A stretch of DNA of 64,000 nt from Blastocystis sp. Blastoise (GCA_039096225.1 JBBPEB010000032.1:1054001-1118000), one strand, 5' to 3'; counted from the stretch's first letter, positions 4,400 to 59,592 are shown. The notes: generated from the letters alone by a model not told the origin. Translations and numbers: made by a program.

Positions 4400-4754
4400 A
4401 GTATGTGCTGTTATCGAATATCAATAGATGTCTAGATTACTCCATTATAAACTTAAGTATTTCTTTTCTTCTTACTTTCCTCTTCTTTTTCTCTTTTTTT
4501 ATTGTTTTTTATATTAATGCTTGAAAAATTATCCAATCGTTTTGTTTATTTTGAATATATTTCATTGGCTGATATCAAATAAATCAGCATTTTTATTGGA
4601 TCATTAATAAAGAATATTTATATATTCCCATGAATTTATCAACTATATTAATGTTTTTCACCACATTTATAACAAAGGTGAAAAAAATTGATTCAGGCTG
4701 ATGACAAAACTTCATGAATGGGGTATTTTAGAGCAAAAACCTGCCTAACAGTTG
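4400..4754 (-). mobile_element. CACTA-family terminal segment, inverted homolog of 27024-27395
   Basis: Reverse complement is colinear with 27024-27395 (e.g. ATCCAATCGTTTTG / CAAAACGATTGGAT, CATTGGCT / AGCCAATG). Ends in degenerate TGCCTAACAGTTG. Confidence 0.6.
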
Positions 4755-4989
4755 TACTTTTTCAAAATTTTGTGAATTTTGCTGTGACTATCACAAAAAC
4801 ACACTTTAAATCAAACTTAAATATTTGAATATTAAAAATATTTTTACGCTGTCAAAAAATTACAAAAATATCATATTCTTTGTGACAAGGACGGCGCCAC
4901 AAAGAAAAAGGGCTTTTTGGAAGCAACCCTACGATATTTCCTTTCAGAGTCTTCCAACACTGGTGGACACTTCTGACATTTTTAAGCAT

Positions 4990-5086
4990 CACTATTAGGC
5001 ACTTTTGACCTTTTAGAATAAATGATTGGCAGAATTCACATTTTTATCCAATCATTTTTCTTAAAACGTCAAAATGCCTAATAGTG
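4990..5086. mobile_element. CACTA MITE (97 bp)
   Basis: TIRs CACTATTAGGCA...TGCCTAATAGTG with 3-bp TSD CAT at 4987-4989 and 5087-5089. Confidence 0.85.
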
Positions 5087-5760
5087 CATATGATTGACAA
5101 ATTAATTTTATGAATCATTTTCTTTAAAACGTTAAAACATATAATAGTATGCAGTCAAAATTAAATAAATAATTTATTATCATGACAACTAGAGCCAAAC
5201 AGGTAAAATGCTATAATTGGCAAATGTAAAAGTATATCTACTGGTTCTTTTATAATAATTATTTGATATTGAAATATTGAGAAACAACAATTTGGGAATT
5301 CATTTATTCATTATAATTTATTATCTCAACAAAATTTGTTTCTTTTATTATAATCTTTTAATGTTATATATGCAGTTACTTTATTAAATAATTATTTACT
5401 GATTAATTAATAAATAAAATTTATTAAAATAAAAAGTGAATATTTGAAAATCTTGCATCATATGCGTTGAGTATAAATCAGTAAAAACTTGGCATTTATT
5501 ATGCATCATGACACTGTAATTATCCCTGCTACCAAAATCATAAAGCCTATTGTCAGCATTTTAAGAAAAATTACAAAGAAAATTCTATTAAATTTCATAC
5601 TTCTTTTTCTATAAAAACATGTTTTCTCGTTGAAAACAGTATGTTAAATTCAATTCCTTCTCTTTGTTTAATAATAACAAGCGTTACTCTCTTAAAATAT
5701 ACATATTTCTTTCAATAAATCAATTCAAAATATTTAATCAAATAGAATATATATTATAAT

Positions 5761-8487: not shown

Positions 8488-9882
8488 TTATAGATTTACT
8501 TTCAGATTTGATGTACTAATATCACAGAGACCTGCTCGAGTTTTTGATGTAAAATATTTTCCATTATATCTCATATTTTGATCTGTTTGTATTTTCTTAT
8601 ATTTTTCACTTCCAAATATATGTATTACAAATGCTAATATATATTGTATATATTTAATAAACGTAAACAAACATACTACTTGGCGTAATATCAATTGTAT
8701 CAACATATTTATATCTAAAATTTGCATTATCTATAACATATCCATCAATATAAAATCTTCCTATTACTATATCATCAAATAAATGATTAGTAAGTGTATA
8801 TTTTGTAGCAATAAATACATCCTATAGTATATTATTTATATAATATTTTCATCATTTTAAATATAATAAATATACAATTGCAATTGGATTTGCATAATAT
8901 GATATTTTATAAGTTTCATTTAATATATTATTATATTCATAATTATTAGTGAATGTTTTATTAAAGAAGAAACTGTCTTGAATATTAGACCTTGTACTCA
9001 CTAGAACTACTTCAGATTTTATTTCTTTCCTATATATAGATTCTAGCACTTTTAGCATTATATTTTCTATATTTAAATTTAATAGTATATCTCCATTTAA
9101 ATATCCATAAAACCATGATTCATATTTTGTTTCTAATGTATTAATAATTGATTTTAATATTGGAACATTATATTTATTTGTTGTATCTATATATAATCAG
9201 TTTTTATAATAAAAATACTTACAATTCAAGCTATATGAAATATTTCGTTTTATACACTCATCAATAGCTAGTTGACTATCTGTAAAAACAACAAATCTTA
9301 TATTAGTATATTTATGGAATATAACTAAACTATCTAAAAAGTAGTTTTGAATAAAATTTCTCGAATTTTGTTCCTATTTAAAAATTTATTACTAAATTAC
9401 TTATTAATAACTAAATACATCATACTGTAATAACTAATGTTGTTCCAAGAACTGCTGTATATCTATTTTTGTAAGTATTACTGGAATCATAATAAAGATT
9501 GATATTATGTTGTTCTTCAATACTTAATAATGAATTACATATTGGTGAATCAAGGTTGACATTACATTTAATCAATTTATCTAGTATATGTATATAGGTA
9601 ACTAAATTACTAGCATACTTAAATCATTAATATATATTTTCTTTGTTGAATAATAATCTTCTTCTGTAAATTTTTGTCTATTTTCTGTGTTAATATCTAT
9701 AGAATCGTAAATAAATTTTCTCTTTGTTAACAAATTCTTTAATTGTATTTGCTATATATTATTAAATATTCTATTTATCTTAACTTATTGTATACCTCTT
9801 TTTCACCAAAATTAAATAATTCTATTGTTACTAGATTTACTAACGATAATATAAATGCAACTACTACTAACAATACAAACAT
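8488..9882 (-). CDS. Putative glycosyltransferase (YGYLNGDILL type), multi-exon
   Basis: Signal anchor MFVLLVVVAFILSLV. Spliced exons give RFVVFTDS, TNKYNVPILKS, FYGYLNGDILL, DVFI and DIVIGRFYIDGY, typical of a nucleotide-diphospho-sugar transferase fold. Confidence 0.65.
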
Positions 9883-35227: not shown

Positions 35228-37897
35228 AATCGTGGTAAAAATATTCCAAGCTATGAGAAACTTTACCTGATTACGTTTTAAGAATAATTCAGCAATAACA
35301 TAGATAGACCCCTATCTGAAATATTCTGATTTTGTTTCAGAAAAATTGAAATAAAGAGTTACTTTTTGTATGTTTTGGGTTATTCATTATATTGTTTAAT
35401 ACTTTCTTTTTTTATTATATTAATATGTCTATTGTTACAATTGTTGCCTTTTTATTATTATTATTTTACTGAATTATACAAAAACAAACAAAACAACAAA
35501 ATAAAAATGAATTGTGACTAATTCATTAACAAAATGAGTTTATAGATATACAATATTAATATTTATAACTTTATTATGTTCATTCAATATTATTTTAATC
35601 ATTTAAAACCTATATAAAAAATCATAAACTATAATCATTCAAAGTAATTATAAAAGAATAATAAATAAATAAAATATATACTTCTTCTGTAGTTTTTGTA
35701 TAGTGATTAATAATATATTACTATAAAAAAAGATAATAAAATAAGAATAACTATTTACATACAATTCATAAAATGGAAGAAAACTTTTATGAAATCTATT
35801 TTACTATAAAAATGAGTTGAATATAATTATATAGATACCTATTATTGCATAGATTGAACCAAATGACTATAAAAGATATAGAAAAATTATTATAGAAAAG
35901 AATGAAAATGTATTTATAATATACATACTTTATTATGAATAAAAATATATTAAACAAAAATTAAAACTAGAAAATCATCTCGTATGTTCTTATTGAACTG
36001 GATAATTATGCTTTTATACTTATTATATCTATATATAATAAAAAAATATTTAAAATAGCATGAAAATAAATAATAATAGAATACTGTTGTCTCAGTAAAC
36101 TATATAAATCATCATTTCTAGTATTATAAAGATATTCTATACTATAATAAACTAAACAAAAATGTAATTAAATTAAATATATAAAGATTCAATTATTAAA
36201 AAATTAGAAAAACAAAGAAAAGAATAGAATATTCTTTAAAATAAGCGAATCAAAAAGCTTCTTAGTGTTTATTAATTGTATTTTTAACTTCGTCATAACA
36301 AATTTTGAGGTTTTCAATGGTTGTTTTATTATTTCTTAAGATATAATTTGTAGCTTTTAATTGGTCCACCTTAGGACTCCACATATATTCCTATATAATT
36401 GTGTTTTGAAAGTTAAAAAGAAATATAAGGTTAGAATATATAAGAATCTAATTAGAGGCATTGTTAGAAATACCCAAAAAAACCATAATTATTTTAACCT
36501 GCCCAAAAAAAAATCGAATTGTTAGAAATACCCAAAATCTTTCAAAATTTTTGTTAAAATACCCAAAATTTTTACAAAATTGGTAGAAATACCCAACTGT
36601 TTATTTTAGACTCTAAACGATTGGTGGTTTGAAAACACAAATTCTTATAAACCAATTAAAATTCTTTTTATTTCTTTTGTCATTATTAGAAAAAATATAC
36701 TCAAGAATATATTTATATTTTCTTTATTAAAGCTTACATAAAAATTTTGTAGTAATTAAAACATAAGAAATATTTTAATAGATTATTATAATAATTTAGA
36801 AAAGTAGTTATTTAATTTAAGATAAGCATTTTTATTTACAAATTAAATATAATTATCTCAAATTTTTGGATTAAGGATAGTATAAATACTGCAGACACTT
36901 ATATCGACTGATTAGTGTCATTTATAGTGTAATAATATATTGTATTGCTCTCGAATAAAGCTTTTAAAAACTACAACGTAAGTTCTCATGATTTTTCATT
37001 AATTAATCACTATAAAAATGAAATTTGTTGTCCAGAATCACAAGAATATACTTTATTTTAATTTTGACATATTTAGACGATTAAAGCTTTAATTACTGCA
37101 TATTTAACAACAAAGATATCTGTAAATCAATATTAAATTCATGTTAATTATTTTTATGTTATAATTTGGTAACTGATTCAGTTCAGCCACAACCAGAAGT
37201 TGAAATATGTTTTGGTTTGATTAAGGTGAACTATCATAAGTTTAAAGATAGTAAATAAATAACAAAATTTGAGACTGTAAAAACATATGGAGTCAAAATT
37301 ATGTATGTAAAAAGTTTCAACTAGAAAATGTAGTTTTACTATATATGTAAAAGCTAGGGTATCGAATAAAAAAACAAAAAACCCCAAAAAAGAAGACTTG
37401 CTTACAGATGTTACATTTCAAATTACCCGTTTATGTTCCATTTCCAAGGTGATGATGTTTCTGGATGGGTAGTCAAAAGATATTGTTGTCACGACTCTTC
37501 TGAGCAAACTTAAATAAATAAATTATATTCTTATATTAACATATTTATAGAAATGCAATCGTTTGTATATATTATATATCAAATGAAACAAAAAGCAAAA
37601 AATAGATTATAAGTTGTTAAAAAATGTTAAAAATAAATTAAATGATTTAAAAGATAATACTAAACAATATATAGTGCTAAAAGAAAGAATAAAAGAAAAC
37701 AAATTAGACATATCATATGAACTATTAATATTTTTAATCAAGAATATATATATATGTATTACATGATTCTACATAAATATATTAATATATTAGATTTTCT
37801 ATTTTATACACAATATTTAATATATATAAATTTATATATATATGTATACATGTATACTATTCAATACATATGTATATCTATTCTATATACATATACA

Positions 37898-37932
<35 letters not shown>

Positions 37933-38153
37933 ATATATATATATATAGCATTCTATACATATGCTTATTTATATCTATATATAGAATTCTAATATATCCG
38001 ATTAAGTATATATATATATTCAATATATATATAATATATATTTTTCTATATATGTTATTCTTCATACTAATAAAAGTAACATATATACACAATTCTATTT
38101 ATTCTTTTATATATCAATATATATATAATTCTATATATCAAATATTGTGTATA

Positions 38154-40030
38154 GCGTTTTAAAAAATGAGAATTCAACTTCAATTGAATGAAAAAAACGA
38201 TTCTTAGAATAATAGGAATAGGAAAATTATAATAAGAAGTGGTAGTAATATACGTAAATGAAGAATGATAATAGAAGTTGATAAAAAAGTAGCATCACAA
38301 GTAAAATGAGAAAGAGAAAAAGTAGAAGTAGAAGGACAAGGAGATATAGAAGGACAAGGACAAGGACAAGGACAAGGACAAGGACAAGAATAAGACGATG
38401 GAGAAGGACAATGATAAGGCGAAGAAGAAGAATAAGAATAAGACGAGTGAGAAGGACAAGAAGAAGAAGAAGAAGAATAAGATGAGGGAGAAGGACAAGG
38501 ACAAGGACAAGAAGAAGGACAAGGACAAGGGCAAGGACAAGGACAAGGACAAGAAGAAGGACAAGGACAAGGACAAGAAGAAGGACAAGGACAAGGGCAA
38601 GGACAAGGACAAGAAGAAGTAGAAGGAGAAGGAGCAGGACAAGATAAAGGACAAGAAGAAGAAGAAGAAAAAAAAAAAAAAAAAAAAAAACATCAGTAGA
38701 AGATAAGAATAAGTAGAATGAGAATGATTAGAAGTAGAAGTATAAGGATAATATAGAAAAAGAAGACGAAGAAGGGATAATATGTGGGTATAGAAGAAGA
38801 AATATGAGAAAAATAGTGGAAAAAGAAGAGACTCAAAAGAGAATAGAAGGAGAGGAGCGAAATATGAATAAAAAGGAGAATAGGAAAGAGAAAGATAAGA
38901 AGGAGAAGAAGAAGGATAAGGATAAGAAAATAAGAATGACAAAGAGAATGAGGAGAGGAAATAGAAAAACGAGAAAAAATGAAGGAAAAAAGAAAGAGAA
39001 GAAGAAGAAGGAAAAGTGAAATTATAAAGCGAAGAAGAAACAGAAAGAGAAAGAAAATGATAAGAAGAATGAGAAGAAGAAGAATAGGAATGACAAGAAG
39101 AACAAGAAGTACAAATAGAAGAAGGACAAGAAGAAAGATAATAGAAGAAGGACAAGAAGGAACAAGAGAAGAAGGAGAAAAAGGAGAAGGAAGAAAAAGA
39201 GAAGGAAAAGAAGAAGGAAAAGAAGAAGAAGGAGAAGGAAAAATAGAAGAAGGACTAGAATGATGAGAAGTATAAGTAAAAACTAAAAGTAAAAAATAAA
39301 TATAAGAAGAATGAGAGAAGAATATGAAAAGGAGATAGAGAAGTAGACGTATAAGTTGAAGTAAAAGGAAAGAAAAAGAAATAAAAGTATAGTAGTAGAA
39401 ACAAAAGTAGAGATAGTGTAGAAGGAGAAGGAAAAGGAAAAGGAAAAGGAAAATCAATAGAAGAAGAATGAAAAGAAAAATTAGAAAAGGAGAAACATAA
39501 AAAGAAGAAGGAAGAGAAAGAGAATATAGAAAAGAAAGAGACAAAATAGAAGAAACAAAACGAAAGAAGTAGGAGAAGAAGAAATAATATTAATAATAAA
39601 AAAATGAATGAGAATAAGAAATAGAAGAATGGCAATAATGCTAATGGGAATGAAAACAAGAATAAGAAGAAAGGGAAATAGAAGAACAAGGAGAAACATA
39701 AGTGCAAGTAAAATAAGAAGAAAAAGTAGTAGTAGTGATAGAAGTGGATGTATAGCATAAGAAGTAGTAGAAGTAAAAGTATGAATAGGAGTAGAAGTAC
39801 AAGTAGAAGTATAAGTGGAAAAATAAGTAGTTGTATTAGTAGTAGTATTAGCAGTAGTGTAGAAGTTAAAATTGAAAAAAAAGAATAGAGTAAGTAATAG
39901 TCGTAGAAATATGAGTAGAAGTACAAGTAGAAATATAAGAATAAAGGAAAAAATGAAAGAAGCTGAAGGAAAAGAAGGAAATGTATAAGAAGAAGAAGAA
40001 GAAATAATAATGAGGAGAAATAGCAACAAA

Positions 40031-40083
<53 letters not shown>

Positions 40084-43000
40084 GAAGAAGAAGAAGAAGA
40101 AGAAGAAGAATTAGGAAAATGAGATGAATAAAGAAATGTAATAAGGAGTAAAATCTTGAGAAATAGAATGAGAAGTAAAAGAATAATAAGAAGTAGAAAA
40201 CTTTAACAAGTATAAATAGAAGAAGAAGAAAAAAAACAATGAGAAATATAATAAAAAGATTGAGAATAAAAGAAAAAAGAAAGAATTGAAAGATAATAGG
40301 AATAAGAATAAGAAAGATAATTAGAAGTACAAGGAGGAGTATAAGGAAAATGAAAAAAAGAAGTACAAGCAGAAGGAGAAGGTAATGTTGAAAAAGAATA
40401 GGAATGACGATAATAAGAAAGATAAAGAGAAATAGAAGGAAAAGGATAATGTGAATTAAAATAAGAATCACAAAAAGAAAAAGCAGAAGGAAAACGAGAA
40501 AAATTTGATTTACAGTGAGGAGAAAAAGAATTGTAAAAAAGAAGAAATATAATAAGAAGAATGAGAACAAGAACAGGAATGAAAATAAGAAAAAGAAGGA
40601 TACTTCAAATAAAAAGAATAACAAGAAAGACATAATATAGACTAAAAAATGATATAGAAGAAAGAGAAGATAGGAAATAAGGAGAAGAAGAAGATAAAGT
40701 AGAAGAAGAATTAGAGCAAGAACAGAATTACAGAAAGAAAAGTAGAATGAAAATAAGAAAGAGAATAGGAATATAAATAAGACGTAGAAGAAGAAATAGA
40801 ATCAAAATGAGACGAATTTAGAATAAAACAGAATATGTAAAGTAGATAAATACGGAGAATGAGAAATGAGAAGTGTATAAATAGAATAAAAATAACTAGG
40901 CGAACAAGTAGAAGAAAAGCAAAAAAAGAAGAATCTGGAGAAGAATCAGAATAAGAATAAGAATATGACTGCGAAAGTAATAGTAGAAGTATAAATAGAC
41001 TTATACTTAGAAGGAGAAGGAGAAGTAGAAGAAGAAGCATAATATGTATAAGTATAAATAGAAGAAGTATAGTATAAAGAAAATAAGAGAATAAAAAGGA
41101 GAATAAATGATATAAGTATAGTATAAATAGAAGAAGCAGAAAGAGAATATGAATAAGAATCGATAAAATGTAAGTATAAGTATAAATAGAAGAAAAAATA
41201 AAAGTAGAACAAGAATAGGAATAAGAATTAGAATTGAAAGAATATAATATGAAAAATAATAATAAGAAGTTGTATTAGTAAAAGTAGATGTAAAATGATG
41301 AATATAAGTTGATAAACTAGAAGTAGAAGAATAAGTTGATAAACAAGAAGTCTAACTATGGTAGAACTAGAAGAAAAAGTAAAAGAAAAAGTAGAAGAAA
41401 AAAAGGAGAAGCTCAAATTGAAGAATAAGAGTTAATAGTAGTACAAGTACAGTAAAAGGAGAATTGAAAGTAGAAGGAGAAATAGCAAGTAGTGGTAGTA
41501 GAAGCAGAAGTGTAAGAACAAGAAGAAGGAAAACTAGGAAGTACAACTAGAACTAGAAGTAGAAGAAAAAGTAGAAATGGACGTATATGTATAAATATAA
41601 GTAAGAGTAGATGTTCAAGTAGAATGAGAAGTATAAGAATAAGAGTAAATAGTAGTAGATATATAAGTATAATAGAAGTAGAAAAATACGAGTAAATAGT
41701 AGTAGAAGTAGAATGAAAATAATAATGATAATAAATAGTAGAAATAGTAGTAGTAGTAGAAATAGAATTAGAAGAATAAGAGTAAGTAGTAGTAGTAGTA
41801 GAAGTACAAGTAAAAGTAACAGTAAAATTATAATTACAAGTAGAAGAATAAAAACACGAAGGAAAAGAAGTTGAAGGACACGAAGTACAAGTAAAAGAAC
41901 TAGAATTGAAATAAGAAAGGAATGAAAATAATAATGATACAAAAAAGTGAAAAGAAGAAGAAGAAGAAGTAGCATGAGATGAATAAAGAAAACGAAAAGG
42001 AAGTAGAATAATAAGAAAAAGAATGAGAAGTGAAATAAGAAGAAGAATAAGAAAAGGAGATAGAATTAATATAAATAGAAGGAGAATAAGAAGTAGAAGT
42101 AGAAGTAGAAGTAGCAAGATAAGGAGAAGTATAATAAAGAGAATGAGAATGAGAATGAGAATGAAAAGAAAAAGTAAAATATGAAAGATAATAAGAATAA
42201 GAATAAGAATAAGAATAAGAATAAGAAGAAAAAGTAGAAATACAAGGAAGAGAGAGGAAAATGAAGATAAGAAGTAGAAGCAGAAGGAGATAATGAGATT
42301 GAAGAAAAAATATGTTGGAGAACAATAATAAGCCTGATAATGAAAAATAGAATGAAAAGGAGAATTCGAAGTAAATTAATAGGTATATGAAGAATAACAA
42401 GAAGCAGAATGAAAATAAGAAAAATTAGAATTAGAATAGAAGAATGGAAATTGTAAAAAGAAGAAATAGAATGAGAAGAGTGAAAACAAGGAGACGAATG
42501 AAAACAAGAAGAATTAAAACAAGAAGAATTAAAACAAGAAGAATTAAAACAAGGAGAAGGACGATACAAATAAGAAGAAGAAAAAGAGAATAGAGAGAAG
42601 AAATGATATAGAAGAAGGAAAAGATAGGGAACAAGAAGAAGAAGAAGAAAACCAGAATAAATAGAAGGAAAAGTAGAAGGAAAAAAGAAAGATAATAAGA
42701 ATTAAAAGGAAATGCAGAAGGAAAATGAGATTAATTTGGAGAAAAAAAAACATGTAAAAGTAGAAGAATATGGAGAATAAAAAAAGGGAAGCATACGAGT
42801 AGAATAAAGAGAACTAGACAAGCAAGGAGAAGAAAGTAAAATAAGAAGAATTTAGATAAGGATAAGAATAAGAATAAGGATAAGAATAAGAACATGACAA
42901 ATAAAGTAGTAGTAGAAGCATAAGAGATGTATAAATAGACTTAGACTTAGAAGTGGAAATAGAAGGAGAAGGAGAAGGAGAAGGAGAAGGAGAAGGAGAA

Positions 43001-45107
43001 GGAGAAGGAGAAGGAGAATAAAAATGATAACAATAAGTATAAGTAGAACCATATGTATAAGGGCAACAACAAAAGATACGAATATAGGAGAAGGAGAAGA
43101 GAAATGAAAATTTGAAGTAGAATGAGAATGAAAATGAAAATAAAAAGTCGTTGAAAAATCAGAATACTAACGAGGAGAAGATAAAGAGGTGTAAAGATAA
43201 TATAATAAAAACAAGAAATAGAATATAAATAAAAATAAGAATAGCAAGAATAGAAAGAATAGCAATAATAAGAAGAATAAACAGAATAAAAAGGAGAAGA
43301 AGAAGAAGATGGAGAATAATAATAAGTGCAAGGAGAAAGAGAAAGAGTGAATAATGAAAATAAGAATAGTTGAATAAAACTAAGATGAAGAATTATAACA
43401 AAAACAGGAAGAAGAAGGAAAATGATAAGAAGAAGAATTAGAAGATGAATAAAAAAACAAAGAATAGAATAAGGAGTATGTTAAGCAGAAGTAAAAGTAA
43501 AATAAGAATAAGATGGAGGAATAGAATCATAATACTAATAACAATTAGAAGAAGAAATATGATAAAGAAACTAGGCTAATTAGAAGAAAAAGAATAGTAC
43601 TATTGAAAATAAGAATAAGAGTAACAAAGAAATATGTACAAAGAAAAATGAGTAAAAAGTATACTAGAAGTAGAATATAGAGAGAAAGACTATGATAATA
43701 TAATGTATAGAAGAAGAAGAAGAAGAAGAAGAAGAAGGAGAATAAGAAGAAAAATGACATGAAGTAGAAGTAGAAGGAGAATAATAGTTAAAAGGATAAT
43801 GTGAATAAGAATATGAAATGAATAATAATAAGAAGAAGAAGTAGACATAGAAGTAGATTGTGAAAGATAACGAGAATGAAAAAAGAAAGTAGAAGGTAAA
43901 TAAGAAGAAGTAGGTGAATAAGTAGTAGACAGAAATAGAAAGTGAATTAATAAGGAGAACGAAATTAAAAAGAAACTACGAATAACACCAGGAATAAGAA
44001 GTAGAAGTAGAATTAGATGAAAACTAGGAAGAAAAAATCAAAATAGAATGAGAATAAGTATATGGAGTAGAAAGCGAAATTCAACGATAAATAGAATGAG
44101 AATAAGTAGAAGAAGAAGAATAATTGGAGAACAAGAACAAGAAGGAAAATAGGAAGAAGAAGAAGAAGAAGAAGAAGAAGAAGAAGAAGAATTGAAAGAG
44201 AAACAGAAGATAAAATGGTTATTTACAATGAGAAAAGAATGGGAAGTAGAACAAAAACTTGAATAAGACGAAGAAGGCAACGGAGAAGGAAAAAGTAGCA
44301 TATGAAGGAAAGGGAGAAGTAGGACGTGGATAGTAATAAAAATAAGAAAGAAAAAATAAAATATTAGGAGACGTGGAACAAGAAGGAGAAAGTGAGATAT
44401 AAGGAGAAACTGAATAACAGAAAAAATAAGAGACTAAATAAGAAAAAAATAGGAAGTAAGACTAATATAAGACTAAGAATAAATTGAAGAAGGACAAGAA
44501 GGACAAGAAGGACAAGAAAAAGAAGAAATAGCAATAGCAATGAGAATAAGAAGTAAATCTATAATGAGAATGAGAAGCAGAAAGGAAGTATAAGTAAAAT
44601 AAGATGTATAGATGAAAGAAAAATAATAAAGATAGAAGATAGAAGATAGAAGATAGAAGATAGAAGATAGAAGATAGAAGATAGAAGATAGAAGAATGAA
44701 AGAATAGAAGAATGAAAGAATAGAAGATAGAAGATAGAAGATAGAAGATAGAAGAATGAAAGAATAAGTATAAGGATAAGAAGAAGAATTATTAAGGGAT
44801 AAGAAGAAGAAGAATAAAAAGGACAACAAAATAATAGTAGAATTCGTGAAGAAGTAATACTAAAGAAAATGAATAAGGAAGAACTAATATCCATATGAAA
44901 AAGAAGAAAAAAAAATGGAGTAAGAAGTTAATTAGAATGAAGAATGAAGAAGAAATAGCATATTAAGAGAAGAACGTGCTAGAGAGAAGCGAATAAAGTT
45001 CAATAAGCAAGATAATTATAATATTTAAAAGAATAGTAAACTGAATAAAAGAAGAGAATAGCAACTGATAACTTCAATCATAAATTAATACTATCTGACC
45101 AAACTCT
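38154..45107. repeat. ~7 kb purine-rich (+ strand) low-complexity tract with no sustained frame
   Basis: Strongly C-depleted on +. Arrays of GAA, GGACAA, GAATAA, GAAGTA, GGAGAA, AAT, a 7-mer AGAAGAT (~44630-44755) and a 15-mer (~42500-42555). All + frames are broken by stops. Confidence 0.85.
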
Positions 45108-45850
45108 CTATAGAAAATTAATAAAAAGTACAATAAGTCTAAAGAATATATAATATTAATAAAGTAATAATATAATAATAACTATTAAGACAAGAATATC
45201 AAATATATATTAATAGTCAGTTAAAATAAATTAGTTATACTATTAAAAGATATATACCTTAATAAAAACTTGAATCATTGCAATTTGTTTTGGTTATGCT
45301 TGGATTTGTTAAGATTCACTAAATAATTATATAAAATAAATAAAATAAATAGATTAAAGTATATATATATTAGAGAAACAACTAAATAGAAAAGTAAAGT
45401 AATTCAATTGTAAAAAATATATTTTTAAGTTAGAACAACATAACAACGCTATGATAATAATAGAGATGTACTAATAGCATAGAAATAAAATAGATATAAC
45501 AGAGAATAAACAAGATGAGAAAATGTAAAATAATTATATACCTTAGATTCATCTTTATTGTTCACCAAGACCTTTTCAGTTGATTTGAAACTAGATAAAG
45601 CTTGTTTTGAATATGTAAACAATAAGCAACCAATTGATCAACTGATTACTATATAAAATTAAATATTTGATGACAGCAGATGATACAAAATATAGATTTA
45701 TAACTAAAAAACATACATAGATTCATTTTATATGTCTATAATGACAATATATGAAATAAATCAATATTTGAATGTCACGAGAAATCATTCTGAGGATGGA
45801 AAAAGCGATAAATCAGCCTAAATAGCTAAACCAACCTCTTTGATAAAAAC
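45108..45850 (-). ncRNA. Spliced leader exons leading into the pyrimidine strand of the 7 kb tract (putative lncRNA)
   Basis: Minus-strand introns 45541-45319 and 45257-45108 (AAG|GTATA...TAG). No ORF. Weak similarity to 50520-50800. Confidence 0.35.
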
Positions 45851-46039
45851 TGTTTTGGGATTTAGTGAACGAGTTTTAAAAATAATTTCTAGAGATTCAA
45901 ATAATGGAATAAAAAGTCTTTTTTGATATGGTCCCTATTCTTAAAGTTTTTTAGAATTACTTCAATCCGTGAAAGTCTTATTCAGCATCAGCTTAAATGA
46001 ACTGCTGAAAGAAGTATATTTTTTAAATATTAGTATATG

Positions 46040-46892
46040 GATTATTTGTTTATTTAGAAGGTTATTTTACACTTTATATTTATATTATATTTTTATATGC
46101 ATATTATTATAGATTAGGAATGAAATGAGCACAGATAATGGACCAATTGGTGACTCATTCTTTTAGGTATGTGTTTATTTTGTGATATTATGTATATAGG
46201 TTTGGAAACATAATCTAGGGAGCCTGATGACGTTGACTATTCAATATTGGAAGAAAACGAAATGATGGGCATTTCCTTGTTGAGAATATTCTTGGTATCC
46301 GTTCTAGTTGTATGTTATTTCATATTTTATTTTTATATTTAATTATTATTTAGGAGATTATTAAAAAGAAAAAAGTAATTGGTCTCCATCTACTAAGAAA
46401 ATTGGTGTTTAGGTCCTTCTTTTGATTTTTATTATTTTATTTTTTATCAGAAGTATATATTTATGTTATTAATACTATATTGTATCTAATTATATAGAAA
46501 TGGCGAGTGATTATTGTTATGGAATTTTTGTAACTTTTCGATTTCAGCACAATAATTATCGAGTCCTTAAAAGTATATAAATATATTAAATAATTATTTC
46601 TATTCTATAGATTTATGGAGTAAATTAATATAATCATATATACAAAAAAAAATACTAGAAGAATATGGTTAAAAAGTATATATTTTTTTATTTTTATTAT
46701 TATTAAAATTATATAAATTTGTTTAATTAAATTTATATATTATAGTTATTTATTTTTGTTATAACTGATGTTCTAACATTGATATATGGTTCAAATATCT
46801 ATATATATATATATTATTTATAAATTCTTAATATTTTATTAATTTATTATATTATTTTTCTATATAGGACTATTAATTATCATTCTTTTATT

Positions 46893-46923
<31 letters not shown>

Positions 46924-47451
46924 TATTTATTTTCGATATATTTTATTCTTATTCATATATATAGTATTATTAAGCTATGTACTCATTAGCTTCTCTACAT
47001 CAATACTACTATGTGACTAGGTATATTATATATATATTTAATTATTAGCATATTATTTTCTATTACTTCTTAATATATATATATTTATATATTAACTAGT
47101 ATTTTTTATATAGAGAATGGGACGTTTCCCTTATGTTATAAACTTCATGGTCATCAATTTTTATATCTAAGGTATATCGTTTTTATATATAAGTAATTGT
47201 TTTATTGTAGTATATTGTTTCAAATTATTTCTATATATTATTCTATTTTCCGTACAATAATTATTTATGTTTTTTATATAATTTATATTATGTACCTATA
47301 ATTACTAATAATATCCTATTGTTTATATTTCTGTTATTCATGTCTCTATAGTTTTATTAGTTATATAAAAACATAACTAGTAAAACTGTAATTACATGTA
47401 TATATTATATAGGTGTTATATAAATATACGAATGTTGCTTTAGTTGAAGAA

Positions 47452-47548
<97 letters not shown>

Positions 47549-48635
47549 GTTATAGACTTTTATTGTATTCTTTTTATATTATTATTTTATACATTTTTCT
47601 CTCTATATAACATATACACAGATATATTTACCTAATATATACTCTTTAGAAAATTGATATATGTTTTATTTTGGAAGTTGATAATATATACTAAAATCAG
47701 TTCATATCAATTGTTTATTCTTAAACTGTATATATATATATATTATCTATCAAAGTCAAAGTTATATATAAATAGAATAATGAAGAATTATCTATATATA
47801 GATGGTCTTTAGTTCTATTACTACATTATTTTTATGTATTTAAGATATATATAAATATATTATATATATACTTTTATATATACTTATTATATAAATATAA
47901 ACTTATAGACTTATATATAGTAATATATCAGTTATCCTTTTATTTTTCTCATGAGTTTTTAAGTATATAGTCTTTTTATCTTATTATATATATAATACAT
48001 TTTTTATAAATTGACACAAAAGGTAATATTATTTGTATATATAATTTTATCTCAACTATTCTTCTATTTAATTCTTTTATATCACTTTATCTTTCTATAA
48101 CTATATTATGTATTATCATTTTATAATATAATTTGTTTATAGTTAATTATATATATATATATATATGTAGTAACAGTAATAACTCTTCTTTTGGTCTCTT
48201 TTGTTCAATTATACTAGTATATACACTATGATAATATATATGTATTCTATTTATCTCATTTTATATATAGTTTTCTATTTATTTTGTTATATTTATAATA
48301 CACTTATTGTTATGTATACTATATTTTCTTTTTGTTTATACTATTATACTTATATCATTTTTATTATATATAGGATTAAGGATATATATATAATTGATTA
48401 TGAATGATTTAGTTTTTGTATTATATTAAGCCTTATTTTCTTGTATATATATATAAATATAGGTATCCTTTACTTTATGTTCCAGTTTTCTTTTCTATTA
48501 TATACATTGATATTCACTATTGTGTATTAATATTATTATATATAGTGTGTGAAGGTATTAAATACATTCTGGTTAAGAGTATATATTTTCATTGTTTTAA
48601 TATATATACATAATATGTTCTTATGTTACATCAAA

Positions 48636-48683
<48 letters not shown>

Positions 48684-49237
48684 TTTCTTTTTTTCATTAT
48701 TACATTTATGTATATATTCATATATATATATAAACTTGTTATTCCCTTAATTAATTCATGTCATATTATTCATTCATTTTTTTATATATGTATATCTTAT
48801 ATTTATTATGTATATTATTATTTATGTATATAGATATTAATCGACTTATAGAAATTATTATAAATAATGTTAATACGATTTTTTTGTATATATTTTATTA
48901 ATATTTATAATAGTTTAATATGTAATATTTTACTATTATAATATTATATTGTGTTTATTTAATTTATTTATATATATTTTATTCATTTATTTTATTCTCT
49001 AGCTATTTATAGAGTATATCTTCAATTTATTTCCTACTATATATATGCAATTCTTATTTATAGTATATATTATATAATACTTCTTTTTTTATATATTTTT
49101 TTATTAGTATTCTGTTCTCTACTTTATTCTTTAATACATTATATTCTGTTATATATTGATATATTTTTTTTATTCTAAATGTTTTCATTATATAGGTTAT
49201 TATTAATAGGTATAATAGATATAAGAGGTATACTGGA

Positions 49238-49277
<40 letters not shown>

Positions 49278-49350
49278 CTACACTTTTTTTATAGTCTCTT
49301 TTCTGCAAACATATATATATATATATATATAATTATATTCGCATAATTAA
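46040..49350 (+). pseudogene. Intron-rich unit without an open frame (pseudogene or lncRNA)
   Basis: Many well-formed GTAT...TATAG introns around 30-110 nt exons. The best spliced frames I tried contain TAA/TAG/TGA (e.g. NLWSKLI*SYIQKKILEEYG*K). Confidence 0.45.
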
Positions 49351-49354
49351 TATT

Positions 49355-49423
49355 CCTTAGACTGAATATGGTCAGTATCAATCATTAATAGATTGTTATC
49401 AGGTTCAATTCCTGATCTAAGGT
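49355..49423 (+). ncRNA. Non-canonical tRNA-like cloverleaf 1 (mascRNA-like)
   Basis: Acceptor CCTTAGA/TCTAAGG. D arm CTGA-ATATGG-TCAG follows with no 8/9 linker. Stem CAATC-ATTAATA-GATTG. 3-nt variable region. T arm TCAGG-TTCAATT-CCTGA (perfect B box). T8 run ~12 nt downstream. Confidence 0.75.
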
Positions 49424-50261
49424 TATATACTATATTTTTTTTATATAAATTTTTATATTTTTCTCTATAGATATTCTCATTCATTATAGCCAGTATGAAA
49501 GGGTATATTGAGTTTCATGTAATTGAATAAACTCTATACATCGTTAGTCGCTCTTCTATATTGTTTTTAAATACCTTTACTTAAAACCAAACACATTCAC
49601 AATTACATTCACCTATAATTTTCTATTCAATAATTTATTTTGTTAATCATTCTTCTAATCAATTCTACACACAAATAAAAAATAAATATTCATCAATAAC
49701 ATCTTGAAGTCTATAAACAATCAATGCATTCTTTGCTTATATTCTTAAAAATCATTTCAACTGTTTATATTAATATAATTGACACTAATGATCATTTGTA
49801 ACATTTATAAACTACTTTCAAAACTTTTAAAGAACCTTGACAAATCTACATTACCTAGAAAACTATTATAATTAACTTTAGTTTATATAGGTCATAATTA
49901 AATTCAAATTACTAATAGAAAATTAAAATAACGACATTCTAACTCAACATATCACCAAGAAAAATCAATTGTGTTTGTAACTTCTCTAAAATTGAATTAA
50001 TTAGTGAAATATGTATTTAAATATATGTTGAATTCAAATTCAAACACACACAAACTCACCTTTTCTGACAGTTCTACACATTTAGGCAATCTAGTGACTA
50101 TCATATAATCGACTAATTCTTCTTGCCTTCATCAAGTCAAGTGATTTTCTCATGACTTGAATCATCAATTTTGTTTTATGTAACACTCTATAAATAATTA
50201 ATCAATTAACTATTTTTATTTACATAAATACATACTTCATCAACAACGACGAGACATCAGG

Positions 50262-51117
50262 AGTAAGAATAACAGTTTAAAGTATTTAAATAAAATAATA
50301 AATAATAAAAAGCAGAAATATTAAGATTTCAATAAAATTTAATAAGTTAATTTATAGTGAAGTTTCAATAATCATATAAAAAATATGATTAATTTCGTTT
50401 TTGTATGTTTTAAGTATATATTTATCTATATATAGGACCTAGGAGTATAGTAGAGTACCTTGCGGTCTCCATTGGCAGATTGATCTAAGGTGGTATGTTC
50501 TCTTTCTCTATTATAAGCTTATATAGGTGATGTAAAATGGTTAAGTTAGATGATCAGCTATTGTCTTATGGTTATAAATGGGATGATGTGACGTCACCAT
50601 ATAAAACTGTTTCTTTAGGCTTTCTCAGTGAGTCACAATGGATTGATTGTGTTTATTGTATCGGTTTTAAAGCTTCCAGAAAATAAAGTTGGTAATTGTC
50701 TCAACAAATTGGTCTTAAGTCACAAAGTAGCACAAATATCTAGGCTTAATAAACAACTTTCATAACTCAAATGTCATCGTTGTTATAGATTTGCTTGTAT
50801 TAATACTCAGATTGTAGATGTATATATTTTCTCTATTTATTTTCTTTATAATTATAATTATATTATTATATATACGTTCATATCTATTATTATAATGTTT
50901 TTAAATATAGTTCTTGCTTTTCTGGTCAATAACTGCTTGGTTTCTTTTTTGTATAGTATATATATATTATTAACTTCTTATATTTTGGTTATATTATATA
51001 AATTTCTTAATTATTGAATATTATTTTTATATATAATTATTATTTACTTTCTTCTATATATTTATTGACTTATAGTTTAAATTATTTCATTTTCTTTTTA
51101 TTTTTCTCTTTTTTATT

Positions 51118-51197
<80 letters not shown>

Positions 51198-53540
51198 CAA
51201 AACTTTTATATATTTGTTTTTATTCATTCTTATTTTCTCCTCTTGTCCTTAATTGGCCTTGTTCTCCTCTTCTCTCTTCCATTCATCTACTCTCTAGTTT
51301 TTACTCATTTTTATTCTTATACTCTTATGTTACATAAAACAGTTATTGTTTTTCTTAATATTACTTTATAGTATGTTTTATTTCATGTTCTTCTATTCTA
51401 TATTCTAGTTTTTCCTTCACTTTCTTCTTTCCTCCATTAATTATTACTGGTTCTTCTTCTCCTATCATTACCTACTCTCTTCATTTCAATCTCTTTATCA
51501 TGATTGTCTTCTTTTTCATTTCCTTCAACTCTTCCTTTTCCTACTCTTCTTCTTTATTTCCTTCTATATTATTACTTCTTTTTCTCATCTTCTTCCAATT
51601 ATACTTTCCTTATTCTTTATTCCTTTTAATTCTCATCTACACATTGTTTCTATTTTCCTTCTTCTTCTATATATCCTTATTTTTTGTCTCCTTGTTCATT
51701 CCTTTCTCGTTCTTTTTCATCTATTTATCCTTCTTCTATTTATTTTAATTCTGAATCACCTTCTCTCTATCTCTTTCTGTTTCTTCTTCTTTTATTTAAT
51801 CTTATTTTTCTTCTGGTCCTTCTTGTCTTCTTTTTCTTCTCCTTCTCTTTCTGTATATCCTTCTTCTATATATTCTTTATCTTCTATCTTCTTCATCTGT
51901 ATTTTCTCTTTTATGTATCCTTATTCTTATTCTACATTTTCTCCATATCATTCTCCTCCTATATCTTCTATACCTCCTTTATCTCCTTATTCTTCGTCTA
52001 TGTCTTCTATTCTTCTTCATCTTTTTTCTTCTTCTATATATATATTCTACTTATTCTTCTCTATCCTTGTCTATATATCTTTCTTCTATATTTTCTGCAT
52101 CTACTTCTTCTTCTATATCTTCTATTTATCATTATTTTCCAACATATTTTTCTATTGTACTTCTTCTTTTCTCTTCCTTCTCCTTCTTTTCTATATCTTC
52201 TGTTTATCTTATTCTTCGTCTATATATAATTATTCTCTTTATTCTTCTTCTTTATATATATATTCTTCTTTTTCGATATATTCTTTTTTTTTTTCGTTCT
52301 TTTCCTTGTTCTCCTTCTCAATCTCCTTCTCTTCATTGATATCCTTCTTCTTCTTCTATTCATCTTTTTCTCCTTCTTCTTCTTCTTCTTCTTCTTCTTC
52401 TTCTTCTTCTTCTTCTTCTTCTTCTCCTTCTTCTCCTTCTCCTTCTCCTTCTCCTTCTCCTTCTTCTACTTCTCCTTCTCCTTCTTCTTCTCCTTCTTCT
52501 TCTATTCATCATCATCTTCTTCTTCTTCTATTCATCTTTCTTCTTCTTCTTCATTTAATCCTTCTTCTTCTTCATTTAATCATTCTTCTCCTCCTCTGTC
52601 TTCTTCTTCTATTTATCCTTCTTCTCTTTCTATTCTCCTATATATCCTTTATCTCCTGTTTTTCCTTCTCAATCTCCTTCTCTATATCTCTTTCTTTTTC
52701 TTCTATTTATCCTTTTTCCACTTTTTCTATATCTTTTGCTTCTTATCTTTCTATATCTTCTCTATATCATTCCTCTCCTTCTTCTTCAGCATCTTCTTTT
52801 TAAATCTTATAATTATTTTCTCTTTTCTGTTTTTCTCATTTTATTCCATTTCATCTATTTTTCTATATCTCATTATTTTCAATATTTATTATACAGAATA
52901 TTATTTATATTTAATGTTTTTCACTTTCATACTCTTTTTCTAATATTATATTTTATCATTCTCCTACATCTTCACTTGTTCTTCTTATGTGTATTCTCCT
53001 CATATTTTTATTTCTTTTCTAATAGATTTTCCTTTATAGTTCTTCTAACTCTTCTCTACCTTCTTTCTTCTTTTTCTCTTCTACATGATTTTCTATTCTT
53101 CATCTTTCTTTTTTCTTTTTTATCTTCTTATCTTATTATCTATATGTGCTTCCTCTTCCCCTAATTCTTCTTTATACATATAAATTCTTTTCGCTCTTTA
53201 TCCTTCTAATCAATTCCTTATTCTCATTTAATTAATATTATTCTTCTTCTTAATTTATTTTCCCTTATTCTCCTTATTCTTGTCTTCAATTTTTTTCTAT
53301 ATTCAATTCTTATTTTTCATTATCTTTTATATCTATATATATATATATATATATACATACTTCTCTTCATATTTTAATTATTTCTATCTGTTATACTTAT
53401 TAATATAATATTTATTTTTATTAATAAAAAGATTTTCCCATTTTTATTTCTTATTTATATTTCTTATTTCATTAATTTATATATATATATATATATATTA
53501 ATATATATATATATTGGATATTATGTATTTTAATATTATT
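50262..53540 (+). ncRNA. Spliced unit with no evident ORF and a 2.1 kb pyrimidine-rich terminal exon (putative lncRNA)
   Basis: Plus-strand introns (e.g. GTATGT at 50493 to TATAG at 50526) and an acceptor TATAG at 51196, then a (TCT)/(TCC)-rich tract 51197-~53330. The ORFs there arise from A-depletion. Confidence 0.4.
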
Positions 53541-53557
53541 ATCATTATTATTATTAC

Positions 53558-53626
53558 TCTTATGCTCTATAAGGTGAGAGGCTATCATAATTAGATAGCA
53601 ATCAGGTTCAACTCCTGACATAAGTC
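53558..53626 (+). ncRNA. Non-canonical tRNA-like cloverleaf 2 (mascRNA-like)
   Basis: Acceptor (T)CTTATG/CATAAG(T). D arm CTCT-ATAAGGTG-AGAG with no linker. Stem GCTATC-ATAATTA-GATAGC. 2-nt variable region. T arm TCAGG-TTCAACT-CCTGA. Confidence 0.75.
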
Positions 53627-54971
53627 ATTCCTTATATATATATATATTGATATTTTATTTAATAAACATTTTAATTATATGTTCTTTTTACACTTATGAA
53701 TGCATTTATTAAATTATTTATAGCTCTTCATCCTTCAAAACTTCATAGTTTCTGAAATGAGTTGTAATCTGTTTTATTCTCAACAGTGTAGCTTATTCGA
53801 AATATGTTAGAATTGAGTTAAATGCAGTTTTAAAACTTAGATTCATTTTTTATTTTCAAAATATACTCAAATACAGAGTTTATTTAGCAATCATTAATAC
53901 TTTAACAACTGTAGTTTATTATTTTAAACTGAATTCTGGTCAGTATGCTCAACATAAGCAACCAAACACAATACATACGCATTCATGATTTTTAAACAAC
54001 ATTTTCCATTTCGACATTTACTTGATCCAGAATAAAACTATCTTTCCTTTTGATATAGTATAGAGAAACTAATACCATATACCAAACAAAACTTGTTAAC
54101 ATGAATCTCGTCATCTATTAAATATTTTTCTTAATCAATTCACAGTTCATACTCTTAAAACAGTTATTTGAGATTAATATTTATATATTTGTCTTTAAAC
54201 AATATTTTCATGACACTGTAATAGTATATATGAAAATACAAAGAATCAAGAAATCTGTTAATTATCAAAAAATAAGTTCTATTTTCTTAAAACATCTTTA
54301 TAAGATTTATAAACTCATATAATATAAATATATAGATCTTATATAAAGTATTCATTGAATTAACTAATTTGTCAGTAAATTAAAAGTATGTTATATAAGG
54401 TAATTCTATGTTATCTTTTTTAATCAGGTTTATCTTATAGTTGTTCATCGCTTATACGTCTGCTAATCTTATTTTTTAAAACAATTACAGACAATTATGT
54501 TATGTTCCTTGTCTATTAAGTTATTTTATTGAATTAATAGTATAAATACAGGGTATATAACAAAACAAATGTGTATATTAGTTAAAATAAGACATAAATA
54601 TAAATAAAGAAAAATAGATAAAATTGCCAATAAGCAAATTCAAGGAATAATATAGTACAACAAATGAATTTCTAATAGAAACTTAAAAATCGATTGATTG
54701 GATCAAATAGTCAAATCGTAACGTCATAATATGAATTATTCTTTTATTTTTTTGTTAATTTAAATTCTAGAAATACATCTAATAAACACGGTTATTATAT
54801 AAATTAATACGATTGGACAATGAAATCAAAATGTTAACAGATACTTTTGGGTATTTCTACCAAATCATACAAAAAATTGGGTATGTATACAAATCAATAG
54901 GGAAATCTGGGTATTTCTAACATTTTTCCATCTAATTAATATTGACAAATACATATAAACATATATATATA

Positions 54972-55694: not shown

Positions 55695-56953
55695 ATGGCA
55701 ACAAGAGGATTTGGTTCACAAGGCTATAAAGCCAAACGAAAAAGTAATTTAATTATTATTATAACTATATATCTAGATATTTCAGTTGCAGATCTGAATG
55801 ATGGATCTCATCATCATATGTTTAATGAAGAATCTAATGATTATAGTAGTATAGAAACTAATGACTTTAATGAAGAACCAAATAAAACCATAAAAGAGTC
55901 ACTGATAGAAAACATAATTGTATTTATATAACTCATTATTACTAGAAGTATTATGATTAATTATATATTATATGTATAGTATTCAAAAAATTGTATAAAA
56001 GAAACAGAAAATAGAAGAGTAGAAGAAGAAATATATTCTTGTTGGCGTTCCTTAACAATAAGTAAAGCTAAGATTAGAAATATATACAAATTAGTTAACT
56101 CTATTCAGAAACTAGCAGCACCTCAAAGTATTCCTATTCCAATTCCTAATCATGGTCAGGATATGATAAGAAAATATTGTACCACTCACAGTGAAACACC
56201 TATACATAAAAATATATATATATGTAATAAATGTAATGAGTTACTTGGATTCAATAGTGGAAGAAATTTGATACCTTTAAACGAAATAAAATGTCAAAAT
56301 GAAGAATGTAATATGAATATTGGTATGCTTATATATATATATATATATATTATACATATATATATATTATACATATTACACATATTATACATATTATACA
56401 TATTATACATATTATATGGCTATAATATATCTATTGTATACCTATTATATATCTATTATGTATCTATAATATATTTATTATATATCTAATATATGTCTAT
56501 TATATGGCTATAATATATCTATTGTATACCTATTATATATTTATTATATATCTATTATATATCTATTATATATCTAATATATGTCTATTATATGGCTATA
56601 ATATATCTATTGTATATCTATTATATATTTATTATGTACCTATAATATATCTATTGCATATCTAATATATGTCTATTATATGGCTATAATATATCCATTG
56701 CATATCTAATATATGTCTATTATATGGCTATTATATATCTATTATATATCTAATATATGTCTATTATATGGCTATAATATATCTATTGTATATCTAATAT
56801 ATGTCTATTATATGGCTATAATATATCTATTGTATATCTATTATATATTTATTATATATTTATTATATATCTATTATACATCTATTATATATCTATTATA
56901 CATCTATTATGTACCTATAATATATCTATTATACATCTATTATGTATTTATTG

Positions 56954-57048
<95 letters not shown>

Positions 57049-59592
57049 AACAAAGGTAACTATCTTACCAATAATTCCAAGGATTCGATTCTTGTTATCT
57101 TCAAAAAGACTAATACATGATATATCATATTATACTAAAGAGGAAATAATTAGTATTCTTCAGAATGAAAGTGTTTCTTTGAATCAAATTCCTTTATTCA
57201 TGACAGGTATAAATTTCAAGAAATCTATAAATGATATTATTAATAAAGGTGACATTTTTCTTGTTTTCAGTATGACCTGTGATGGAATATCACCCTTTTC
57301 AGATCCTGTCTCAGATGAGAATCTATCTTCATTTCCTATTCTTATAAAGTTGCTGAACTATAAAGAAATAAGAGAAGCAGATCATCGTAAGTTTTGGACG
57401 TATAGTGTCACAAAGGAATCATTCTCATCTTCAATATTTGATATATTAGTAGAAGAATTTAAAATCCTATATAAAGGGATAGAGATGGATGTTTGTATAA
57501 ATGATAGAATAGAAAAGAAAACAGTAATTGGATTATTATTACATACATATGGAGACTGTGCTGCCATTACGAAAGTTGCAAACTTTACAGGATCCTCATC
57601 CCTTTATCCATGTAGATGTTGTGAGTTAAGATGGTGCAGAAAGCAAAAACATTTTCATCAAGGCATAAAATGTACATATAAAGAAGTCAAGAAATATGTA
57701 CATACAAATAACACGAAAAAATCAGTAACAAGTATAAACTATCCATCAGCCGTATTATTAAATAATAAATCTACTCCCTATTCTATACTACCACAAATGA
57801 AGGATTATCATACATCAAATGATACTATTATTGAAAGACTACCCAGGAAGGATTCTTTTAAAGATTCGCTTAAATTAGTAGAGTATCCATTAAGAACAAA
57901 AATATCAATTCAGAAAAATAGAAATTCATGTAGTGATTGTGTATCTTTCAAAGGTATGAAGAAAATTCCAGGTATTCTAGAAAAACTTCCATATTTCGAT
58001 CCATCAACTTGCTATTGCATCGATACGATGCACTTGTTCAATAATGTTTCTACGCTAATTATTAATTTGCTGTTTGGTTTTAATACTAAACAATATGCTA
58101 ATAAATTATCCAGGAAATATTTCAGTAACGGAGAGAAGTATATTAAACATTTTTCATTAAATCCTACAAATATGTCCATTATTGAGTCTCGTATATCATC
58201 TATTAATACGTTATATAATAAAAATGAATATGAGTTCAGATATATATTAGATGAAAAGAAATATTATAATATGTCATCACATACAAGAATCTTCTTCGTA
58301 TCATGTATACTACCACTAATAACCCTAGACTTTAGTAATGTTGATTCACCAATAATATTATTAATAGATCCTCTAGCTACAATAATATATCAGGCATTTT
58401 CATATAATGGTAATACTCCCAGCGCTTTATTGAACATATTTAAAGATCAATGTTCTCTATTCTGTTTTCTTTGTGAACTATTGTTACCAAGAGAAATTAT
58501 AAACTCTCAAATTCATCTTATGAAACACTTACCTGAAACAATTATAAATTCAGGATCTTTAATATACTCTTCCACCTATGAATCTGAACGTTTCTACTCA
58601 TTTCTTAAACGATCTACTTACGGAAGAAAAAGATTTAATGAATCATGTATTAGAGTAATAATAGAAAAGGAGGTTACCGATATTAACTTAACTGATAATT
58701 TAGAGGATATAAATGAAGATAATATAGTAAATGATATATTAATTGCTGAACATAATAATGATAATGAAAATGATTTTCTTTCTCGAGAGGACACATTTGA
58801 AGGTTTTACTAATATTCATATTAATCGAGGAGAAATAAATGTAGTAAAGGGTTTGCGTGCTTCTCCAAATATTGATTTATCTGAATCACAAATAAAGGAA
58901 ATAATTTATATTCTATTATCATCACCTAATGACTTTGTTAATATGGCACTTCTCCCTAATGTAGATATAAACAGTTATATAAATATTTCAAGTTGTCTTG
59001 AAGATCATTCAGTTTTTCAAACATTACTTCTAAACTTCAAAAAGATACCTATTGTTTTTTACTCAGAAGTATTAATTAATGAAACCAAAGTATTTTCTTC
59101 TTCAGGAGTTGATGAAGGTATTGAACGACAAGATAATTCATATATAATGTATAATACGTATGATAGTGGAGAAGAACAGCAAACTCATCTTATTAAAGCA
59201 CTAAACTATATTCAAATTGGTCCTTTTATATTGATCCAGAAACACGAGTATCCATTAGCTCGTATGTCACGAACTAGATTATATTATATTATAAATGATT
59301 CTAATAGACAAATTCCAAGAACATCTAAATACTCAACATCTTTCATTGATATTTCCAATATAATTCCAGAAAATTTAATTATAGTAGACATTCATAATAA
59401 TAAGATTATGGAGAGTGACGCTTCTTATGAAGAACCATCAGTATATAATATATATATATATATATATATAGAATATATATATATAATATATAGATAAGGA
59501 GTAAAAGAAGTATTATAAGAACTGAATTTGTTTCAGCAAACTCAGTCATTACTAGCACAGTATTTATGCCACGTTACTGTAGATCATTATAA
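55695..59592 (+). CDS. EnSpm/CACTA-superfamily DDE transposase (Transposase_21-like), 5 exons
   Basis: The N-terminal CxxH/CxxC exon joins in phase (G|GA) to the large exon 57048-59440. Motifs FSMTCDGISPF, LLHTYGDCAAITKVANFTG..LYPCRCC, IDTMHLF and HLMKHL..INSGSL..STYESERF. Last exon 59494-59592. Confidence 0.88.
56340..56960. repeat. Intronic minisatellite (9-, 11- and 13-bp AT-rich units)
   Basis: ACATATTAT repeats, then ATATCTATTAT / ATATGTCTATTAT / TATGGCTATAA units, inside transposase intron 56323-57047. Confidence 0.85.

Follow-up and report, generated by a model that had tools for sequence, protein, structure and literature searches.

A 64-kb stretch of DNA from Blastocystis sp. Blastoise (JBBPEB010000032.1:1054001-1118000; hereafter the window) contains two tRNA-like cloverleaves on its plus strand, copy A at 49355..49423 and copy B at 53558..53626. 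We show that they belong to a multicopy family of tRNA mimics, present in at least 150 and up to about 276 copies in this genome and common to unrelated DNA transposons, namely Mutator-like elements, Helitrons and an element with long terminal inverted repeats (TIRs). Patterns of substitution argue that the fold is kept by selection on pairing, and its loop is non-decoding. The most likely reason for keeping such a fold would be that host tRNA-trimming enzymes cut or release transposon RNA. Our best guess, held at a probability of about 0.45, is that RNase P and RNase Z cleave the RNA polymerase II (Pol II) transcripts of the transposons in cis at the mimic.

Family size and conservation of the fold

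The initial annotation had placed two cloverleaves here, and both the sequence and minimum free energy (MFE) folds bear this out (z of -2.9 for copy A and -2.1 for copy B). Copy A (Mutator type A) forms a 7/4/8/5-bp four-way junction with the D-loop GG and the T loop TTCAATT; its acceptor stem pairs 49355-49361 with 49416-49422, the T arm occupies 49399-49415 and the discriminator base is 49423. Copy B (Mutator type B) has a 6-bp acceptor stem, 53559-53564 with 53619-53624, plus a T.T first pair, and its T arm lies at 53602-53618. For the D stem of copy B, the CTCT/AGAG proposed earlier is the MFE register, whereas the family alignment gives 3 bp plus T.T. The window holds two occurrences of the T-arm 17-mer, and 100 shuffles yield none. 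A covariance model of the family scores copies A and B at 92.9 and 90 bits, respectively, and finds no third mimic in the window.

What had been presented as a pair is real, but the two copies are part of a large family. The T-arm pattern has 276 matches in the AT-rich, 33.3-Mb genome of this tortoise gut organism against 0 for a reversed control, and 30 of 30 loci cut out around the pattern are full mimics. The covariance model, built from 23 distinct variants and used for the genome search that the initial annotation had proposed, recovers structure-conserving homologs in at least 150 copies, all those listed scoring at least 84.7 bits. Sequence was read directly at 50 loci.

An unguided alignment of the 23 variants leaves 95% of stem cells paired, as against 37-43% when registers are slid in the same alignment. 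Change on both sides is seen in 11 of 22 pairs, and 0 of 500 shuffles match the 95% pairing together with the covariation. Since such shuffles are blind to kinship, we also compared the seven distinct types: between them 17.1 of the 19 pairs outside the T arm are kept, compared to 10.0 in a neutral simulation of random substitution, and pairing survives in 100 of 134 double changes. Stem cells hold 13 G-U and 3 A-C combinations, which favours an RNA fold of the plus strand. The T arm and the D-loop GG are invariant in all 23 variants. Together the results argue that the fold is maintained by selection on pairing; the compensatory stem changes first noticed in two copies hold across the variants, as does the architecture that had been likened to mascRNA, linker-less with a D-loop GG and an intact T arm. 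The variable regions of 2-3 nt described earlier need revision: in most variants, copy A included, 2 nt pair with the dinucleotide that follows the D stem, so that the two short linkers complete an 8-bp anticodon-like stem and a linker-less 7/4/8/5-bp four-way junction.

The anticodon-like loop has 5-7 nt with a variable centre and begins with A (position 32) in 22 of 23 variants. With such a loop, no fixed anticodon and no linker residues, the mimic is unable to decode, in line with the earlier view that these are unlikely to be ordinary decoding tRNAs. Like canonical eukaryotic tRNAs (RF00005), the mimics have a cloverleaf, the T loop consensus, an equivalent of G18-G19 and no encoded CCA, but they are without the U8-N9 linker, N26 and a variable loop, and an 8-bp anticodon-like stem stands in place of one closing a 7-nt loop with Y32, U33, R37 and a constant anticodon. 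Both copies score under 29 bits, below the Rfam tRNA cut-off, whereas ordinary tRNAs of the genome score 60-75 bits, and an Rfam scan of the two yielded no relevant family, either at the gathering threshold or with E as high as 10. That the mimics are functional decoding tRNAs for a local genetic code, as ARAGORN calls of type B (Ile-AAT / Val-AAC) and stop-rich purine tracts nearby might indicate, is hardly credible in view of this loop and these scores, and the genome holds standard-code open frames of about 1600 aa. In the window ARAGORN calls copy B alone, as Ile-AAT, and leaves copy A uncalled. Dense mirrored tRNA sets in C9 and C12 probably represent an organelle genome assembled twice.

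Transposon carriers of the mimics

Both window mimics are cargo of a non-autonomous Mutator-like DNA transposon of 18.5 kb (36455..54929, plus strand), flanked by 9-bp target-site duplications at 36446..36454 and 54930..54938, the latter being where the flanks of other copies begin to diverge. Its TIRs are short and imperfect; the left one (36455..36475, plus strand) is followed by subterminal GAAATACCC motifs, and the right one lies at 54909..54929 on the minus strand. The right end is present in 16 copies in the genome. In 7 of them an intact MULE transposase is located 17.6-20.4 kb upstream of that end, and each carries both mimics, sense to the transposase. Left ends of these seven copies are 75% identical to that of the window element, which falls in a sister group of about ten copies with left ends 94-100% identical; a search for the MULE domain in the window copy and its sister group gave no match. 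The 9-bp duplication, the TIRs and the MULE transposase of its autonomous kin identify the carrier as Mutator-like. The initial annotation missed that the pair is transposon cargo. A copy of the element at C22:23477-46364 is 100% identical to the window's over the left 1846 bp, indicating very recent transposition. The element also contains a 7-kb purine-rich tract (38200-45050), with all three stop types in every plus frame, and a minus-strand intron-like leader at about 45200-45800.

Other versions of the mimic reside near both ends of active Helitrons, always antisense to RepHel: type A is found 170-681 nt short of the 3' end, and type B some 2 kb away from the 5' end. We find 109 hairpin-CTAG ends in the genome, CTAG followed by T at 14 of 14 Helitron 3' junctions, and a 5' TC in part of the copies. 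Rep matches number 51, the majority with open reading frames of 1200-1680 aa, and the protein combines Rep with PIF1 helicase domains. These carriers are thus Helitrons by their 3' hairpin plus CTAG, insertion before T and RepHel. A further mimic type sits in a 4.7-kb long-TIR element with 231-bp perfect inverted arms (L047 977-5615), whose interior is an (ATT)n tract with repeated splice-acceptor-like motifs and the mimic at its end, and two more elements carry further types.

A degenerate repeat of ~244 bp follows Helitron mimics in 3-5 copies. One unit of it also follows copy B (53941..54169, plus strand; nhmmer E 1.5e-17 with a profile built from Helitron units alone), indicating that more than 70 nt were exchanged between superfamilies. 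In L036, ~244-bp tandem units at 4410-5125 and 8644-9620 have a 488-bp higher-order period and are non-coding in all frames; an open stretch with repeated xGSS/GSV motifs (6530-6200, minus strand) starts a spliced Helitron cargo unit opposed to the mimic-ended unit, which suggests a divergent promoter. The three nearest foreign Helitrons, at 38-40% RepHel identity, contain no mimic, and an exact pattern covering the CAATC/GATTG subtypes had 0 matches in metagenome contigs, both searches being of weak power. Behind the window element, 55695-59497 (plus strand) holds a CACTA-like transposase gene with a weak DUF4218 match; a relative of it occupies L036 780-3670 and is closely followed by an inserted Helitron.

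Such a distribution could be read as that of a tRNA-derived short interspersed nuclear element (SINE), or of a decayed tRNA gene, that was captured on one or a few occasions and then amplified passively with DNA transposons. The mimics share with tRNA-derived SINEs and tRNA pseudogenes of RNA polymerase III (Pol III) a tRNA origin, plausible from the boxes, a B box, a partial A box, a frequent T run and a high copy number; the latter tracks transposon amplification, and copies in young subfamilies are identical. However, we consider passive amplification quite improbable as an explanation. It is largely refuted by the compensatory changes that three stems show across the seven types, and these contradict the decay with non-compensatory divergence that the initial annotation had weighed for tRNA or SINE heads, while plant tRNA-derived SINEs lose the cloverleaf (PMC3858429). 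Copy A is 96-97% identical among six element copies, beside upstream flanks at 53-72% in three more distant copies. At the 50 loci read, moreover, the mimic has a position fixed per element family, has no body, tail or target duplication of its own, and moves as cargo of Helitrons, Mutator-like and TIR elements.

A role at the DNA level, as a single-strand four-way junction or protein-binding site in transposition, is very improbable. Helitrons pass through single-stranded DNA, and the fold is a perfect four-way junction. Against such a role stand the G-U wobbles on one strand, the signature of a tRNA elbow, and the presence of the mimic in cut-and-paste Mutator and TIR elements as well.

Units upstream of the mimics

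Copy A closes a plus-strand, intron-rich and apparently non-coding unit (46040..49354) that is predicted to be spliced. In its 5' part, introns at 46167-46199, 46453-46497 and 46573-46610 keep GT/AG in 5 of 5 homologues, exons of the unit differ by -1, +1, -5 and -8 nt among homologues, and plus-strand donors and acceptors are in excess in the unit. The kept splice sites and non-triplet exon indels make the 5' part look like a spliced non-coding RNA. The unit before copy B (50262..53557, plus strand) likewise appears non-coding; it has a short leader with a conserved intron (50403-50435), then a pyrimidine tract from about 51200 to 53330, and stops in all minus-strand frames. Several predicted splice sites of this second unit and of the 3' part of the first have disappeared from some copies. 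Same-strand intron-rich or pyrimidine-rich units closed by a mimic are found for Mutator A and B, Helitron B, L045 and L047. The earlier claim that mimics lie downstream of spliced non-coding units therefore appears to hold for the 5' part of the Mutator A unit and is not general, Helitron A being without one.

We rejected a protein-coding or recoded reading of the upstream units, on account of non-triplet indels between copies and all three stop types. A chromodomain-like stretch near 46270 is not conserved among copies, and a 70% BLAST similarity of the sequences that precede Helitron A and Mutator A stems from microsatellites and not from homology.

The mimic might instead be a small RNA released from an intron of a non-coding host transcript, in the manner of a small nucleolar RNA. 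A pyrimidine tract plus AG that resembles a splice acceptor is found 45-140 nt after most variants and is conserved after Mutator A, at about 49470; yet acceptor-like motifs are frequent in this AT-rich genome, and neither the sequence upstream of Helitron A nor the pyrimidine tract preceding type B offers a donor. We regard intron-encoded release as quite improbable.

Pol III-type signals

The B box noted earlier, GGTTCAANTCC, is perfect and invariant in the 23 variants, and the main types have an A-box-like T-R-C-N3-A-N3-GG one mismatch from consensus. A (TA)n tract at 49311..49332 (plus strand), a possible Pol III TATA element, ends about 25 nt before copy A; most variants have TATATA within -45..-10, at -21 to -36, above a background of 0.21. 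That T runs follow, as had been noted, is so for copy A, with a T8 run and possible Pol III terminator at 49435..49442 (plus strand) 12 nt after it, but weakly for copy B (T4 at +27, T5 at +59). T5 is found within 13 nt in 4 of 7 types (Mutator A, Helitron B, L008 and L012) and in part of a fifth, some of the Helitron A variants, against a background of 0.06-0.11 (0.11 for T5 within 20 nt).

These signals suggest, as a tentative alternative ranking close behind cleavage in cis, that the mimic is a stand-alone Pol III gene with its own B box, partial A box and upstream TATA, its product being trimmed by RNase P and RNase Z. The product might act in trans, as a decoy for elbow-binding proteins or a source of tRNA-fragment-like guides, or TFIIIC and Pol III might form a chromatin barrier protecting the transposon. 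A Pol III gene would also account for Helitron A, which has no upstream unit. Its terminators are awkward, however: T4 is missing from the first 60 nt behind several Helitron A subtypes and L014. It is 65-144 nt away in L014 and five Helitron A variants, and for Mutator B the distance is 21-49 nt. A role purely as a barrier would not call for covarying acceptor stems, the TATA and the T run could be left over from an ancestral tRNA gene, and the placement at the ends of spliced units is left unexplained. Cleavage in cis and transcription by Pol III are compatible, not exclusive, and draw about equal support from sequence.

Proposed cleavage of transposon transcripts by tRNA-processing enzymes

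In the cis model that we favour, the mimic would be a transposon-borne, tRNA-derived RNA signal retaining the acceptor stem, the T arm and the D-loop GG elbow alone. A sense Pol II transcript running through it would be cut by RNase P, possibly the protein-only PRORP in this host, at the 5' end and by RNase Z at the 3' end. These cuts would end the spliced non-coding transposon transcript without a poly(A) tail, release an RNA of ~70 nt and leave the downstream RNA uncapped, leading to 5'-3' decay and termination. The benefit, in a genome with Argonaute/Piwi genes, may be that antisense and read-through RNA is stopped, whether from host read-through into the Helitron 3' end, divergent transcription or TIR-to-TIR transcripts.

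Recognition by RNase P and PRORP needs the D/T elbow and the acceptor, and not the anticodon arm (PMC3858429). Since the conserved acceptor stem, T loop and D-loop GG are what these enzymes read, processing by tRNA-maturation enzymes is likely whether the RNA is made by Pol II or Pol III. The cis model fits the positions of mimics near element ends, each pointing to the nearby end (1.3 kb for Mutator B, about 2 kb for Helitron B, and about 1 kb before the 231-bp arm in L047), and it fits the apparently spliced, frameshifted units that mimics close, the antisense orientation seen in Helitrons, the lack of T runs in several subtypes and the two Piwi-domain (Argonaute-like) loci, C26:481274-482069 and C17:834697-835765. 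A search of the genome for an RNA-dependent RNA polymerase gave no match, and its controls likewise were without a match.

Several observations weigh against cis cleavage. Helitron type A has no intron or spliced unit before the mimic within the element, and the model needs host read-through or an own promoter there. The model search found no mimic at the end of the minus-strand intron-rich unit of the Mutator element. Mutator mimics are sense to the transposase, so that blocking of antisense RNA is not universal. No A-rich tract of the MALAT1 type precedes any variant, no conserved leader-trailer pairing surrounds any, and the +1 base is never G. Pol III transcription would explain the perfect B box, the TATA before the mimic and the close T5 just as well. 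The type of RNase P in the host is unsettled: a PRORP-domain exon at C15:235107-235274, a candidate for protein-only RNase P, is weak (E 0.009, below cut-off), and a genome search for RNase P RNA gave no match, controls likewise.

A bolder version of the cis model is possible but doubtful. Superfamilies would swap a shared cassette in which the mimic recruits RNase P and RNase Z as a strand-specific Pol II terminator, an RNA-only anti-silencing device that destroys antisense and read-through RNA before it forms double-stranded RNA for Argonaute silencing, and this would be an independent origin of the mascRNA design.

Comparison with known tRNA-like structures

mascRNA is without eight tRNA linker residues and keeps the two D-loop guanines (PMC11693755). 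The mimics resemble mascRNA and menRNA, from vertebrate MALAT1 and NEAT1_2 (MENbeta), in their four stems without linkers, 7-bp acceptor, intact T arm, two D-loop guanines, non-decoding anticodon-like arm and position at the 3' side of apparently non-coding units. In contrast, the Rfam mascRNA-menRNA model detects neither window copy, whether at its gathering threshold or with E allowed to reach 10; the mimics have 68-69 nt and are AU-rich, whereas mascRNA has 58 nt and is GC-rich. Their leaders are (TA)n and TTA repeats and by eye have no A-rich triple-helix (ENE) tract, and their trailers show no conserved pairing, both unlike mascRNA (PMC8457004). The upstream units of the mimics are predicted to be spliced, hundreds of copies lie inside DNA transposons, and processing of the mimics is a prediction. 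Plant mitochondrial t-elements are likewise tRNA-like structures in longer transcripts, cut by RNase P (PRORP) and RNase Z (PMC3858429), but they punctuate organellar mRNAs, whereas the mimics are nuclear, transposon-borne and multicopy with one conserved design. By this comparison the mimics are built like mascRNA/menRNA and t-elements, and may work like them, but are members of neither.

Significance

Vertebrate MALAT1 and NEAT1 are described as the only long non-coding RNAs ended by the tRNA-processing machinery (PMC12941219). In the literature we found no description of such tRNA-like structures in Helitrons or DNA transposons, and the accessible part of the Blastocystis genome paper, which gives 33.3 Mb and 23% GC for the tortoise strain Rus-B, has no mention of tRNAs and no transposon family names (PMC12129017). 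The strain is cultured and RNA-seq was used in its annotation (PMC12129017), and the mimic should therefore be testable at once. The natural variation within the family serves as a mutational series for the requirements of RNase P and RNase Z. A covarying, linker-less mimic in hundreds of stramenopile transposon copies would represent an independent arrival at the same minimal fold, and points to DNA transposons that may control their own transcripts via host enzymes.

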